From: Hyphochytrium catenoides
Lineage: Eukaryota > Protista > Hyphochytriomycota
Direction of reading: 5' to 3'
NCBI GenBank assembly: GCA_900088475.1
Contig: FLMG01003436.1
Coordinates: 1-64,000 of the forward strand
Length of the DNA stretch: 64,000 bases
The position numbers and the translations under genes were made by a program. The stretch's first letter is position 1; every line of letters begins with the position of its first letter. The notes below the pieces were generated by a model, which was not told where the DNA came from, made no database searches, and worked only from the letters and a program-made list of their open reading frames with translations. Shown here in pieces: positions 32,543 to 37,653 of the stretch.

Positions 32543-35500
32543 TTAATGAAGAATCTTTTGCTCAAGGATATGGTGAACTAGGGCATGGTAATCTCTTTCC
32601 TTCTCTCGGCTAGGACTAGCAGACTTTATTCTTGGGGTCACCTGATACTCAAGTGAGTTCAGACCCACCGTCAGCTGTAACAGGAACCACATATCGCTTT
32701 CCTGACATCACGGAGAAAGGCCAATGTTAGCTTACGATGGCAAACAAACAAAGAGTCTGGAGGTGCCAAAGGGCCCATTAAGTGTCCGAACAGCTTGAAG
32801 ATCATAATCATAAATGAGCACTTGCGGTACAGGGACATAATTTAAATATAAAACGGCATGAAAGTAAGATCACTCCCGAATTGAGAAGAAGCACAGCCCG
32901 GACAACACGTAGCGAGGCAAATGATGTATAACAGGGGAACCGGAGACCAGGCTGTAACTATAGAGGAATCTGGGAATATGTGGAGGGTAAGGACGAGAAA
33001 GCAGGGATAAAACCTTCTCCCAAGCATAGAAAAACAAGCGCAGCTCTGAATTAACAGAGCCGCTGGCTATGCAGAAGATAGCAGCCTCCTCAAAAGCTAA
33101 GCGTATGTTCAGCTCGTCGGGCTTTGAGCTACCTACTAAGGACCAACCCGGTCTGGGAGGGGGGAGCAAGAGATCAGTCTTACAAAAATAAAGGTAGAGG
33201 GGGAAGCAGCATCAAGGAAGTTATCTGGGAGCGCACATCTCTAAAAAGAAGAGCCCAAGCTTACCCTGGTTGTGAAGAGTTCCAATAGCTCTCAAAAACT
33301 CCAGCTGCCAATTGAGCATCCGAAGCAAGCTTCAAAGTTCCTGTCCAGAACGAGAGAGGTTAAAATGAAACGTCACCTCTTGCAAGCTCCACTTGGCTCA
33401 GTTCGGAACGCCTGGCAAGATTCACTCTGAAGGTCCCTGTGCTATTTTCCCATTCCTCCTTACTTAATTCGACCCCTAAATATAAGCCTCGGCAAGTTGC
33501 CTTTTTGACTTAGCGTGTAAGTTTTATGATCGCCTCTTTGTACCTTTTGGAGGGGCAGGTTTCACGTCTTTGCTCTGCTTCTTTAAATGCCTTTCAGGGC
33601 TGGTAACACTGATGCCATTATTGTTTGTGGCAGGCTTGAGACTAGGAAGCTGGCGCCGTGTGGCATCCTCCCTAAGGGTCACAAATGTCACATATAGGAG
33701 GCTGAAGAACAACCCCTTAAGCTGGCGATACCAGAAGTCTCAGTACTGGGTAGGTCTATCTGAAGGAGCCAACATAAGGAGTAACATGCGTATTGCCAAG
33801 AGTAGGGGGACCGACGTACTCTGCTGGAGGCATCGTAGTTACGGACTTCAAATCTGCCCTCGTTGTATCAGTTTTTATCGTATCTTCCTGTGACCTGTGA
33901 GGTACCGAAAGCTGAAATTCTCCTGTTGCTTCATCTTTAATAATTGCTTGCTTCTCTTCCGGTCTGCCTTTCTCTCCCTTACTAGTTATACCCTTAGACG
34001 GTTTGGAGGAAGACAGCTTGCCTCCACCTCTTGGTGTAGCGAGAAAAAGGCTTGAAAGTAGCAGTCTTGTGCCACCCAGTCGCTTACGCGTGATAAACAC
34101 CACGCTGGACAGGAGGGCTAGACCGAGCAGAAGTAGTAGCAGGATCACCTCTATAGAGAGCAATATCAAGAGGGCACAAGCAAACAAGACAGGCAGGTGT
34201 ATTAGCGAAAGAAGACGTAAGGCTATGCAACAGAAAAGATGGGAAGTGTCAGACGTGTTGAAGAGCCTAAAGGTTAACTCGGATAACCAGCGTCATCAAC
34301 AAGAGGTACTAGTAACAGCTACGCAGTATCTCAACAATTCACGTCAGAGGTCAAAGAAATGGTAGAAGAAGACGGAGAGAGGTACCCGGCGAGGCCTCTC
34401 CTTCTTCAATATCTGTGCTGGATAAAGCCAAGGCTGTCCTAATCATTTCTTCAGTGCCATCGGGTCGGATCCGCGATACTCTCTCCCGTTCGGCACCGGT
34501 AACCACCTCCAGACTGATTTCTGATGCACTGGCTGCGCTTGCTGCAAACTTTACTACGCTAGTGTATTTCTTCCCATCACGCAGGAGAGAGGGGTCCAAC
34601 CGGATGTAACAGGACAGAGAACTCTCTGGAGAGAGGAGCAGAGGTAGAATATGATTACAGCTAAAGCTAAGCCAGGACACAGTCGGCCTTGCGCCGATGG
34701 GCGCGTCGTCGACCTCTTCCCAGGAATGGAAAAGGGTCAGAGTTTCGCTGCCGCTATTATAGAGCTTCACAGCCACCACTTTTTCTCGGCTCTCTCTTGT
34801 CAAGTCAACACTAACCGATCGAGCGTCAAAAGATAACTCCCCTGAGCACACAATAACGAACGACGAATCAGCCACGGAGAGGACACGTAAGCCATACTTC
34901 CACTTAGATGAATGTGCGGAGAGAGGCATAGCCTTTCAAAGTCTCATCCAACAGAAGGAAAAGCGTTTTTAAAAAAGAGAAAGGGACAGGAGGCTCTGAG
35001 AAGAGGGTCAAATCTCCTGGATCATGGAGCTCAAAGAGGATCGGCTTACCAGCAGCAAAGAAATTAGACGACAGATAAGGCCATAACAAGACTGATATAG
35101 ATTGGTGTTCGTCATCACATCCCTCACCTAGCGCCAAGCCGTTCTTTGACTTCGTTTTCAGTACCGCGGTTGAGGGCTTCCAAGTTCTGCTGAGGTATTT
35201 CCATGACCGGCTTCGACGGGCTGCAGAAAGCTGAGCAACGATAGACTCAAAGTTCTTCCGCACGTCGCGCTCCGAGCTAAAGGGTCCTATGCCCATGAAG
35301 GCTAGGGTACCATGATCCTGGGGTGAGAGGTTATAGATTTTTATCCTGTCGGTCTTGAGCTCAAGAGTAGAAGCGATATCGGTGGAGAGCGTCTCGAGAA
35401 ACTCACGCCGCCGACTCGGAGCTACCAAGCCACCGTATGGGAGGTCCAGCAGCAACGATATCTGGCCCAGATAGTACCTCAAGGAGCCATCATCACCTGT

Positions 35501-35740
35501 TATATCAGCCTGAGAACGATCCTGCCCAATGACGTGATCATCAAAGCGCGTGACGTCTTTGATGTCCAGACCTCTTAGAGAAGTCTGAGCCTCCCCGGTA
35601 GCAGGCGGAGCAAACTGTAACCCCCAACCATCGGAGACATCCGAGGTATAAGCGTGGACCAGTTGTCCTAACAGGACTACGGTTGCGATCCTGACAAAAA
35701 TCGAGAACAGCACTCTACATTCTCTCTTTGTGCGCATCAT
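32543..35740 (-). CDS. Type I single-pass membrane protein with a C-terminal beta-adaptin appendage (platform)-like domain
   Basis: Signal peptide (IATVVLLGQLVHA), luminal SEA-like and Ig/BACON-like segments, TM EVILLLLLGLALLSSVVFIT followed by RKR, disordered linker, then LASDAQLAAGVFESYWNS...IRLAFEEAAIFCIASGSVNSELRLFFYAWEK|ESDMWFLLQLTV...IKS...LVHHILEQKILH. All 8 exons join in phase through GT-AG introns. Confidence 0.75.
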
Positions 35741-36654: not shown

Positions 36655-37653
36655 TTAAAAAGGAAGCGGATTATTGAGAGTGCGAAATGAAGCCACTGAA
36701 ACGAGCAAATCCAGTGTGCTTGCCGAAAGCGGGTCCAGGGGAAGTGCAGACCTGGAGGTGTTAGGTGTCAGATCCATTGCGTCATCCTTCCTGCTAGAGT
36801 CGTTTAAAGGAGGTATGAAACTTGAATCAGGGGAGATCAGGCTAGGCCCGTCATTGCCGAGACTGAGATCGAGATCTTGGACATCTAAGACTGGAACAAC
36901 TTGTTCAAAATCGTCGTCTTCACCAGCTTCTTCGATCAATTCCGTCAGTTCTGAAGCTTCCTGAATAAGCCCTTGTTCTGCTAGCTGTGCTATGGCAACT
37001 GCCTCACTCGTAGACCTCCGGGCAGCGTCCAGCATCTGCTGTCCAGCAATGAGTTCTCCAGCTAAAGAATCCGATCGCTGTAAGCTTCTGAGCTGCAATG
37101 CCGCACTCGTCTGAAATAAAGGGTTATCTTGCGGTGACCGTTCCTGTGTCAAAGTCTTCAATGACGCGAACGATTGAAGGGCGGGAAAGGGACTGACTGT
37201 TTGTTGAGGATCCGCCTGTCTACCATAGATGCTTGCTAAGACCGCCTGCTGAAGTTTTGTAGGGTCGAACGTCTTCTCTGTCACAGGTAATGATGCCCCC
37301 AGACTGTTGAGATTTACGAGGCCATTATTGGTTGGCTGAGCTACTCGCTCATAGATGTTGGCATCCTGAAAGAGCCCGGCCGCGTTGTGCAAACTATTAT
37401 CAACTATGAGATCTCCAGCTCTCGAGTTTACGCGATGTAAGCCCTGCATTCGGGCTGCAAGAAACATGCTCTCATAGGGAGCAAACCTGGCAGCCTTCGC
37501 TAGTTTACTCCGCCGACGGTCCACATTCCTTTGGGTCGCATTCGCTTGTTGTCTATGCTTCTCACAGAACCGGTGCAATTGGCCGTTCTTCTTTATGGCC
37601 CTCGGCTTTTTGCAGTTTCCCACACCGTAACTACAAAGAGAACTTTCGCCCAT
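36655..37653 (-). CDS. Intronless protein with an N-terminal oomycete-type C3H zinc-binding/basic domain; putative transcription factor
   Basis: CSYGVGNCKKPRAIKKNGQLHRFCEKHRQQANATQRNVDRRRSK followed by Q/S/acidic low-complexity sequence; 332-aa ORF. Confidence 0.8.
   Translation of the reverse strand: MGESSLCSYGVGNCKKPRAIKKNGQLHRFCEKHRQQANATQRNVDRRRSKLAKAARFAPYESMFLAARMQGLHRVNSRAGDLIVDNSLHNAAGLFQDANIYERVAQPTNNGLVNLNSLGASLPVTEKTFDPTKLQQAVLASIYGRQADPQQTVSPFPALQSFASLKTLTQERSPQDNPLFQTSAALQLRSLQRSDSLAGELIAGQQMLDAARRSTSEAVAIAQLAEQGLIQEASELTELIEEAGEDDDFEQVVPVLDVQDLDLSLGNDGPSLISPDSSFIPPLNDSSRKDDAMDLTPNTSRSALPLDPLSASTLDLLVSVASFRTLNNPLPF

Follow-up and report, generated by a model that had tools for sequence, protein, structure and literature searches.

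The gene described here occupies the minus strand of a 64,000-nt stretch of Hyphochytrium catenoides DNA (hereafter the window), where positions 35740-32543 can be read as an in-phase, eight-exon GT-AG model whose seven introns leave a coding sequence of 2001 nt, or 666 aa (Table 1). The coordinates, exon borders and peptides given for it in a preliminary description are all present in the sequence, and those quoted for the three final exons agree letter for letter. The locus is present once in the genome and contains no N.

Table 1. Exons (E1 to E8) and predicted features of the gene model; positions are those of the window.
Feature	Positions	Strand	Description
E1	35740-35128	-	204 codons + 1 nt; start codon
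Signal-peptide-like N-terminus (E1)	35740-35651	-	
Rest of E1			predicted disordered, acidic stretch followed by alpha/beta core at ~aa 91-182
E2	34841-34386	-	151 whole codons; beta-rich luminal region, then acidic juxtamembrane stretch
E3	34150-33820	-	TM helix, T-RKR stop-transfer and first 90 aa of low-complexity cytosolic linker
TM helix (E3)	34148-34092	-	
RKR stop-transfer (E3)	34088-34080	-	
E4	33671-33544	-	42 codons; linker continues, K/P/S/T-rich; phases fit
E5	33475-33377	-	32 codons; doubtful exon
E6	33340-33265	-	24 whole codons; ear-like first strand with D.QL....FE..W motif
E7	33152-33014	-	46 codons; ear-like helix and two strands (..IASG.., ..FFYA..)
E8	32701-32543	-	52 codons + TAA; strands W.L..L and ..IKS, then C-terminal helix

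Codon-usage log-odds, trained on the other long open reading frames of the window, were positive for every one of the eight exons when read in the model frame and negative when read in either of the others. Of the introns, the five of at least 112 nt scored negative in all frames, and the two short ones, of 68 and 36 nt, were marginally positive in one. The signal was strongest in E4 (+0.197), with E2 at +0.106; the sum over E5 was only +2.7 bits, and the weakest bias of all was found in the ear-like part (E7, +0.023 bits per codon). The phase of E2 is compatible with both E1 and E3, and an alternative E1 donor at 35050 would leave the phase unchanged while adding 26 aa. At the 3' borders, the E3 donor (GTACGT) is of a type also present in the genome's AP-4 beta gene; that of E7 (GTTTTA) is atypical and is a weak point of the model. 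A further weak point is E5. The introns on either side of it, introns 4 and 5, are the two short ones, as compared to ~200 nt in this genome's adaptin genes and a published mean of 208 nt (PMC5795050). Since E4 can be spliced directly to E6 through a 203-nt intron with the frame kept, E5 may not be an exon, and its peptide has no similarity to ear sequences.

The amino-terminal half of the product has the hallmarks of a type I single-pass protein, as judged from hydropathy and motifs: a signal peptide, one TM helix, and positive charges on its C-terminal side. The signal peptide, TM helix, stop-transfer and cytosolic linker that had been described earlier were each recovered. The N-terminus consists of a basic n-region, a hydrophobic core (residues 10-28, with a best 19-residue Kyte-Doolittle window of 2.25) and a V-H-A cleavage-type site. 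Approximately 330 luminal residues separate it from the TM helix at the opening of E3, where the 19-residue Kyte-Doolittle value rises to 3.07 immediately before T-RKR. Acidic residues precede the helix and four basic residues follow it, so that by the positive-inside rule everything downstream would be cytosolic, and the cytosol is the only side on which an ear could act. The rest of E3 and the whole of E4 are low-complexity and belong to a cytosolic linker of ~120-150 aa. The ectodomain is less clearly defined. A low-confidence model has a SEA-like look, and a domain of that kind looks as much at home in surface or mucin-type proteins as in cargo receptors; the AF2 single-sequence model of E2 is all-beta with a pLDDT of 47, and at that value it is unreliable.

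The preliminary description had also claimed that the protein ends in its own beta-adaptin ear-like domain. The tail in question comprises 123 aa encoded on three small exons, E6 to E8, that end the protein, with the stop codon directly after the C-terminal helix as in beta-adaptins. When the eight pieces of the gene were scanned exon by exon, the only Pfam match was to the beta-adaptin appendage family PF09066 (B2-adapt-app_C), in E7 (E 0.25, 11.8 bits, spanning profile positions 39-68 of 112); E6 and E8 taken singly were stopped by the HMMER filters. This score is below the curated cut-off of 22.6 bits; 36.5 bits were obtained with a 52-aa piece of a genuine ear. The structural part of the original claim is supported exon by exon, as a collinear match to beta ears in which no single exon reaches the family threshold.

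The exon-by-exon match was established against two ears encoded in the same genome, one of the beta1/2 type (on contig C283) and one of AP-4 beta (on contig C454). The latter is a true AP-4 beta ear, with a PF09066 score of 63.9 bits, far from the 11.8 bits of the one matching exon here, and with the human AP4B1 appendage (2MJ7) as its sole PDB match. E7 matched the C454 ear with a BLASTP E value of 6e-6, and E8 matched the last piece of the C283 ear in the expected position (E 0.007). Each exon also scored above shuffled sequence at its collinear ear position (p = 0.003 for E6, <=0.0003 for E7 and 0.009 for E8), with none of 3,000 shuffles of E7 attaining the real score. When 2,608 six-frame segments of the window were scored against the reference ears, E6 and E7 each ranked first, with the start of the C283 ear as the reference for E6, and E8 ranked 23rd; the runner-up segments came near to E6 and E7 (47 vs 52 and 36 vs 37). 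Of 2,604 chains in the window, that of the three exons came top, scoring 118 as compared to 98 for the next independent chain. The similarity of the tail to ears is significant only because the three pieces match in order, and chance triple-match chains are estimated at ~0.1 per genome, which is not negligible.

Individual residues follow the same pattern. In E6 the residues D, Q, L, F and W are spaced exactly as in the C283 ear, and the motif can be found by eye in human AP-4 beta. In pairwise alignments two aromatic residues, Trp in F...W and Tyr in FYA, fall on beta-ear positions that we take to be W841 and Y888 of beta2; MAFFT applied to the short ear pieces stacked all Trp residues and so misplaced the pieces. 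The beta2 positions that bind the motif Arg, presumably E902 and R879, are Q and G in this tail, making a beta2-like specificity doubtful. When the three exon peptides were co-folded as separate chains the score was 0.01, a result that counts neither for nor against the platform fold of a strand, a helix, a sheet of four strands and a C-terminal helix. Overall, the tail statistically resembles a beta-adaptin platform ear, each exon match being weak, and its middle part is, by sequence, closest to the AP-4 beta ear of the same genome.

We also looked for relatives of the gene. No homologue of any part of it was found in any collection searched, and hence neither its conservation nor its architecture is confirmed in other species. 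Word searches with the E1 and E7 open reading frames and with the C454 ear were blank or spurious, and when E2 was run in full with HMMER against 1.84 billion representatives, it returned only spurious bacterial or low-complexity repeat proteins. There were no homologues of E2 or E8 among metagenome loci, none of E7 or E8 in the ESM Atlas, and no ear among PDB sequences searched with E6, E7 and E8; the only PDB match in that search, PCNA, was a chance one. Within the genome, no paralogues of E1, E2 or E7 were found, two weak matches to E2 being translations of CT repeats, and genome-wide searches with PF09066 and the two real ears did not retrieve the locus.

Whether the ear-like exons and the membrane protein belong together is a question of gene structure. 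There are no Pfam matches in the exons upstream of the ear, and none of the genome's 34 matches to the adaptin trunk (Adaptin_N, PF01602) lies on this contig (C167); lacking such a trunk, the protein is not an adaptin subunit. It is rather unlikely, in our estimation, that E6 to E8 are carried on a different transcript, as a small soluble free ear driven by an internal promoter (its start could be Met 33833) or as an alternative isoform, with the membrane protein ending after E3 or E4. A shorter membrane protein could be made, since read-through of the E3 or E4 donor meets a stop within 20 or 5 codons, and the junction region, with E5 and its two short introns, is the weakest part of the model. 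However, from 33833, which lies close to the E3 donor, as far as E8 there is no in-frame ATG, and just one other ATG and donor could be joined to the acceptor of E5 or E6, the donor (GTCCCC) being poor. Both the E4-E6 and the E4-E5-E6 splices are in phase with the upstream gene, and E4 itself has the strongest codon bias of any exon. With no adaptin trunk on the contig and no separate in-frame start before the ear, a fusion is the most economical gene model, and the most economical reading places all exons on one transcript. It is very improbable that E6 to E8 are instead silent remains of a beta-adaptin gene, part of which was duplicated and came to lie downstream of a membrane-protein gene unrelated to it. 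Although the low codon bias of E7 and its odd donor would suit a relic, the tail has diverged far from both paralogues, with about 25-33% identity to their ears over short stretches, and still all three of its exons are open, with phases that match, borders that are GT-AG and a stop right behind the last helix, where neutral sequence of such age should carry stops and frameshifts. At roughly 25-30% identity to the paralogous ears, frames would not be expected to stay intact unless the tail were expressed.

The remaining alternative concerns the resemblance itself, which could be chance or convergence, the tail then being an unrelated, lineage-specific small alpha/beta domain on an orphan membrane protein. 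Every match is below the family threshold, E8 is well down the ranking of window segments, the runners-up to E6 and E7 are close, and the estimated genome-wide expectation of such a chain is ~0.1. Against this, consecutive parts of the domain are matched in order by three neighbouring exons, two of these exons are the window-best matches of two different reference ears, Pfam independently names PF09066 and no other family, and the length of the domain, its C-terminal position and its cytosolic side all fit an ear. A coincidence of this kind seems to us quite unlikely. The gene of this oomycete-related protist most likely encodes, as predicted from its sequence, a single-pass membrane protein with an adaptin-ear-like cytosolic end, and the combination is unusual. 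The fuller statement, that one gene specifies a type I membrane protein whose C-terminal platform domain is homologous to beta-adaptin ears, with that of AP-4 beta as the nearest, is one we hold to be somewhat more probable than its negation.

If the fusion is real, the product would be a protein of about 630-690 aa with a cleavable signal peptide and a luminal or extracellular part possibly composed of a SEA-like alpha/beta domain and a beta-rich domain. Beyond the TM helix, a floppy cytosolic linker would carry the ear at the very C-terminus. Exon shuffling, or partial duplication of the 3' end of an adaptin gene, is the probable origin of the ear, which would since have diverged under selection. 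As on adaptins, the tethered ear could then provide a surface on which cytosolic trafficking proteins dock by their short linear motifs, such that the membrane protein would bring or hold ear partners at its own membrane without an AP complex. The sequence features, exon phases, codon bias and collinear likeness to ears are observed directly; the single transcript, the fold, the binding activity and any sorting role of the tail we infer, and the suggestion that the protein is a self-sorting receptor recruiting coat accessory factors is to be read in the same conditional sense. Candidate ligands can be pointed to in the genome, as LFGG[LM]SL-type sites are clustered on contig C1128, and a motif of this type in tepsin binds the beta4 ear (PMC13335578). 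A more specific scheme, in which an AP-4-beta-type ear recruits tepsin-like or LFGG[LM]SL proteins, directly to its membrane, allowing a cargo or surface protein to nucleate or hijack part of an AP-4-style coat without AP-4, is conceivable but unlikely.

Adaptin ears are known on soluble coat adaptors, and cargo carries short motifs for adaptors to read. With an ear on a membrane protein this arrangement would be reversed: a reader domain would have passed, in nature, from adaptor to cargo, and the hub domains of coats would be seen to be open to shuffling onto membrane proteins. Such a protein would also allow one to ask, in a simple natural setting, what a tethered ear suffices to recruit, a question that links to a protein of this genome with many AP-4-ear-type motifs. 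If the tail is unrelated to ears or is separately transcribed, the locus is an orphan surface-protein gene only.

Among known systems, the protein is most like the AP-4 beta appendage, both human AP4B1 (2MJ7) and the C454 ear: its tail, like theirs, would be a platform-only ear of ~120-125 aa that closes the protein and is preceded by a flexible region. For human beta4, the appendage construct has 125 aa (residues 615-739; PMC11064669). The order of motifs is also shared (D.Q.....F...W, ..ASG.., FFYA and an aromatic-.L..L strand), and the C454 ear is the best match of E7. The differences are that a signal peptide, ectodomain and TM helix here take the place of the Adaptin_N trunk, and that two introns interrupt the ear-like domain, which in C454 is encoded by a single exon. 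The beta1/beta2 platform (PF09066, C283) is matched by E6 and E8 through its first and last pieces, each in the expected place, and in both genes the conserved Trp has a phase-2 intron after it, at a distance of 6 codons here and 8 in C283. Unlike the beta1/beta2 appendages, however, the tail has no sandwich subdomain ahead of the ear, and the residues presumed to contact the Arg of FxxFxxxR in beta2 are not conserved. Among membrane proteins, TANGO1 and cTAGE5 are single-pass and engage coat machinery directly through a long cytosolic part, binding COPII by coiled coils and proline-rich regions with no adaptin-type domain; the analogy is functional only, as neither is related in sequence to the present protein. 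Classical type I sorting receptors such as sortilin/Vps10 and the mannose-6-phosphate receptors carry short linear sorting motifs that are read by adaptors, whereas here the reader domain itself would be on the membrane protein, the reverse of the usual arrangement.

Open segments in all three frames on the minus strand between positions 35740 and 32543 can be joined through seven GT-AG introns whose phases all agree, and the stretch reads as one gene. Its eight exons (E1-E8) give a CDS of 2001 nt encoding 666 aa, and the locus, which is free of N, occurs in one copy in the 61-Mb assembly. The borders given for E6-E8 in the preliminary description recur unchanged in the spliced model, and the peptide quoted there matches the translation of these exons exactly. 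Twelve other long ORFs from the window served to train a log-odds model of codon usage. By this model, all eight exons were positive in their assigned frame (at +0.02 to +0.20 bits per codon, compared with +0.04 to +0.19 for the training genes), the remaining two frames were negative, and the introns of the gene of at least 112 nt were negative in every frame.

Exons of the gene model, with the matches of the last three to pieces of the adaptin ears encoded on contigs C283 and C454 of the same genome (rank among 2,608 window segments)
Exon	Position	Strand	Remark	Reference ear piece	Shuffle p	BLASTP E	Rank
E1	35740-35128	minus	two donors of common phase, the second at 35050				
E2	34841-34386	minus					
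E3	34150-33820	minus					
E4	33671-33544	minus					
E5	33475-33377	minus	doubtful				
E6	33340-33265	minus		first C283 piece	0.003		1
E7	33152-33014	minus		middle of C454 ear	<=0.0003	6e-6	1
E8	32701-32543	minus	TAA at end	last C283 piece	0.009	0.007	23

The model is weaker around E5 and at the end of E7. Introns 4 (33476-33543, minus strand) and 5 (33341-33376, minus strand) would be 68 and 36 nt long; introns in adaptin genes of the same genome measure about 160-400 nt, and the published mean for Hyphochytrium catenoides is 208 nt (PMC5795050). E5 is doubtful because a direct splice from E4 to E6 leaves the phase unchanged: either the two putative introns are unusually small, or E5 is unreal and a single 203-nt intron separates E4 from E6. 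The tail encoded by E6-E8 is in frame with or without E5. The E7 donor, GTTTTA, is atypical, and three more in-phase GT sites follow it downstream within that open frame; the donor chosen in the preliminary description makes the loop shortest and aligns best with the ears. Elsewhere in the genome, two adaptin genes (C4646:59531-61165 and C3584:374-1705) have uninterrupted frames of 1,022 and 917 aa, with Adaptin_N scores of 320 and 217 bits; the other adaptin genes have many exons.

At its N-terminus the protein is basic at first, then has a hydrophobic core (Kyte-Doolittle 2.25 over 19 residues) and a V-H-A site. Signal-peptide cleavage as predicted would leave an aromatic residue in first place (the Y following V-H-A, residues 30/31, position 35651, minus strand), as in plastid-targeting signals of photosynthetic stramenopiles; this is likely meaningless, since an acidic stretch comes next and descriptions of the organism say that it has no plastid. 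At the start of E3, a 19-residue segment (Kyte-Doolittle 3.07) is preceded by acidic residues and followed by T-RKR and more Arg, which makes the topology type I and the C-terminal part cytosolic. The luminal exons gave poor single-sequence AlphaFold models (that of E2 is all-beta, with pLDDT 47), and the ectodomain is therefore labelled as possibly a SEA-like domain plus a beta-rich domain. The remainder of E3 and E4 encode a low-complexity linker rich in K/S/P/G/T. Within it, positions 33894-33935 (minus strand) encode D-E-A-T-G-E-F-Q-L-S-V-P-H-R, in which the Phe is preceded by acidic residues and an Arg stands at +7, both features of the beta2-ear motif [DE]nX1-2Fxx[FL]xxxR; compared with that motif, the hydrophobic residue is at +2 rather than +3, and the helix would be broken by the Pro. 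E-K-Q-A-I-I, encoded a little upstream (33939-33956, minus strand), is a loose acidic di-hydrophobic pattern, and both resemblances may be due to chance.

The preliminary description had proposed that a transmembrane receptor is fused to an ear-like domain, resembling the C-terminal platform subdomain of the beta-adaptin appendage, and had named the family PF09066. In a Pfam scan run exon by exon on the eight pieces (E <= 10), this family was indeed the sole match, but a weak one and on E7 alone (E 0.25, 11.8 bits against a curated cut-off of 22.6, profile positions 39-68 of 112). With the same profile a true 52-aa ear piece scored 36.5 bits, and E8 scored nothing. Two genes of the genome have real PF09066 ears. 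That on C454 has a platform-only ear (63.9 bits) in a single exon behind an adaptin trunk, the sole PDB match being the human AP-4 beta appendage 2MJ7; the C454 gene is the orthologue of AP-4 beta. The ear on C283 is of the beta1/2 type and is broken up by CT-repeat introns and assembly gaps; at C283:2843-3662 it occupies at least three small exons with two N runs, and the assembly lacks part of the platform domain.

In searches likewise run exon by exon, every match of E6, E7 and E8 fell at the collinear position of the reference ear. E6 and the first C283 piece share equally spaced D, Q, L, F and W; by BLASTP, E6 had no match to the C454 ear. When all 2,608 six-frame open segments of the window (106,530 aa) served as a control, the E6-E7-E8 chain scored 118 and the next independent chain 98 (2,604 chains). 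Each piece by itself is weak. A rank-based estimate was made of the chance that the best-ranked hit in a window to the middle piece is directly flanked by the best-ranked hit to the first piece on its upstream side and, on its downstream side, by a hit to the last piece ranked 23 or better: such an ordered triple is expected at ~1e-4 per window, or ~0.1 per genome over ~950 windows, a figure that leaves out splice phases, the stop after the last helix, domain length and the cytosolic side. The splice phases do match, the stop directly follows the last helix, the tail is cytosolic, and its length is 123 aa, the human beta4 appendage construct having 125 aa (PMC11064669). Genome-wide searches with real ears as queries did not retrieve the 35740-32543 locus. 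We consider it highly probable that the tail is truly homologous to adaptin platform domains.

Adaptin_N has no match on the contig of the gene, so the ear does not terminate a gene of the usual adaptin kind, and the membrane-protein exons are the sole upstream coding exons on the same strand. There is no in-frame ATG from the Met at 33833, close to where E3 ends, as far as E8. Only one other ATG-plus-donor pair fits the acceptors of E5 or E6, and its donor, GTCCCC, is poor. Identity to the paralogous ears is ~25-33%, which implies a long evolution of the ear exons; that they are still intact argues for their expression. A single transcript carrying both the transmembrane part and the ear seems likely, though the gene may also give a short isoform or, from Met 33833, a soluble ear. 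Its upstream neighbour, a 332-aa ORF (36655-37653, minus strand), has an N-terminus rich in Cys and His (C..C...C, then H..C..H) and is without a Pfam match at E <= 1.

The tail is a tethered C-terminal domain on the cytosolic side, and its sequence is ear-like. It would be expected to fold as a platform domain and, in the manner of adaptin ears, to bind short linear motifs; accessory proteins of trafficking could then dock on the membrane protein itself. Instead of a self-sorting receptor, the protein could equally be a sink for ear ligands or compete for them and, with a possibly SEA-like ectodomain, a surface protein fits as well as a cargo receptor. E7 is closest to the AP-4 beta type (..ASG.. 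motif). Since the tail does not conserve the positions that contact the Arg of the beta2 motif, its specificity is more probably beta4-like. In tepsin, the motif bound by the beta4 ear is LFxG[M/L]x[L/V] (PMC13335578). LFGG[LM]SL-type sites number 35 genome-wide, against 23 with a reversed-pattern control, and six of them cluster on contig C1128 (5114-5574 and 12986-13122, minus strand), a locus that is a candidate ligand, nothing more.

No relatives came up in word searches that took the ORFs of E1 and E7 and the C454 ear as queries, a blank that says little on full-length relatives, as these searches cover proteins of 0.55-1.75 times the query length. Neither two metagenome scans nor an Atlas search yielded relatives. 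A full HMMER search with E2 against 1.84 billion representatives returned repeat-protein noise alone, and this points to a lineage-specific luminal domain. The proposed architecture, unusual but open to testing, is partly supported; it is known from one orphan gene, and the sequence statistics behind it are weak though coherent. In a word-based literature search, no adaptin ear was found described on a membrane protein. Unlike a beta-adaptin, the present protein has no trunk, and hence is not one; if real, it would place a known domain in a new context.
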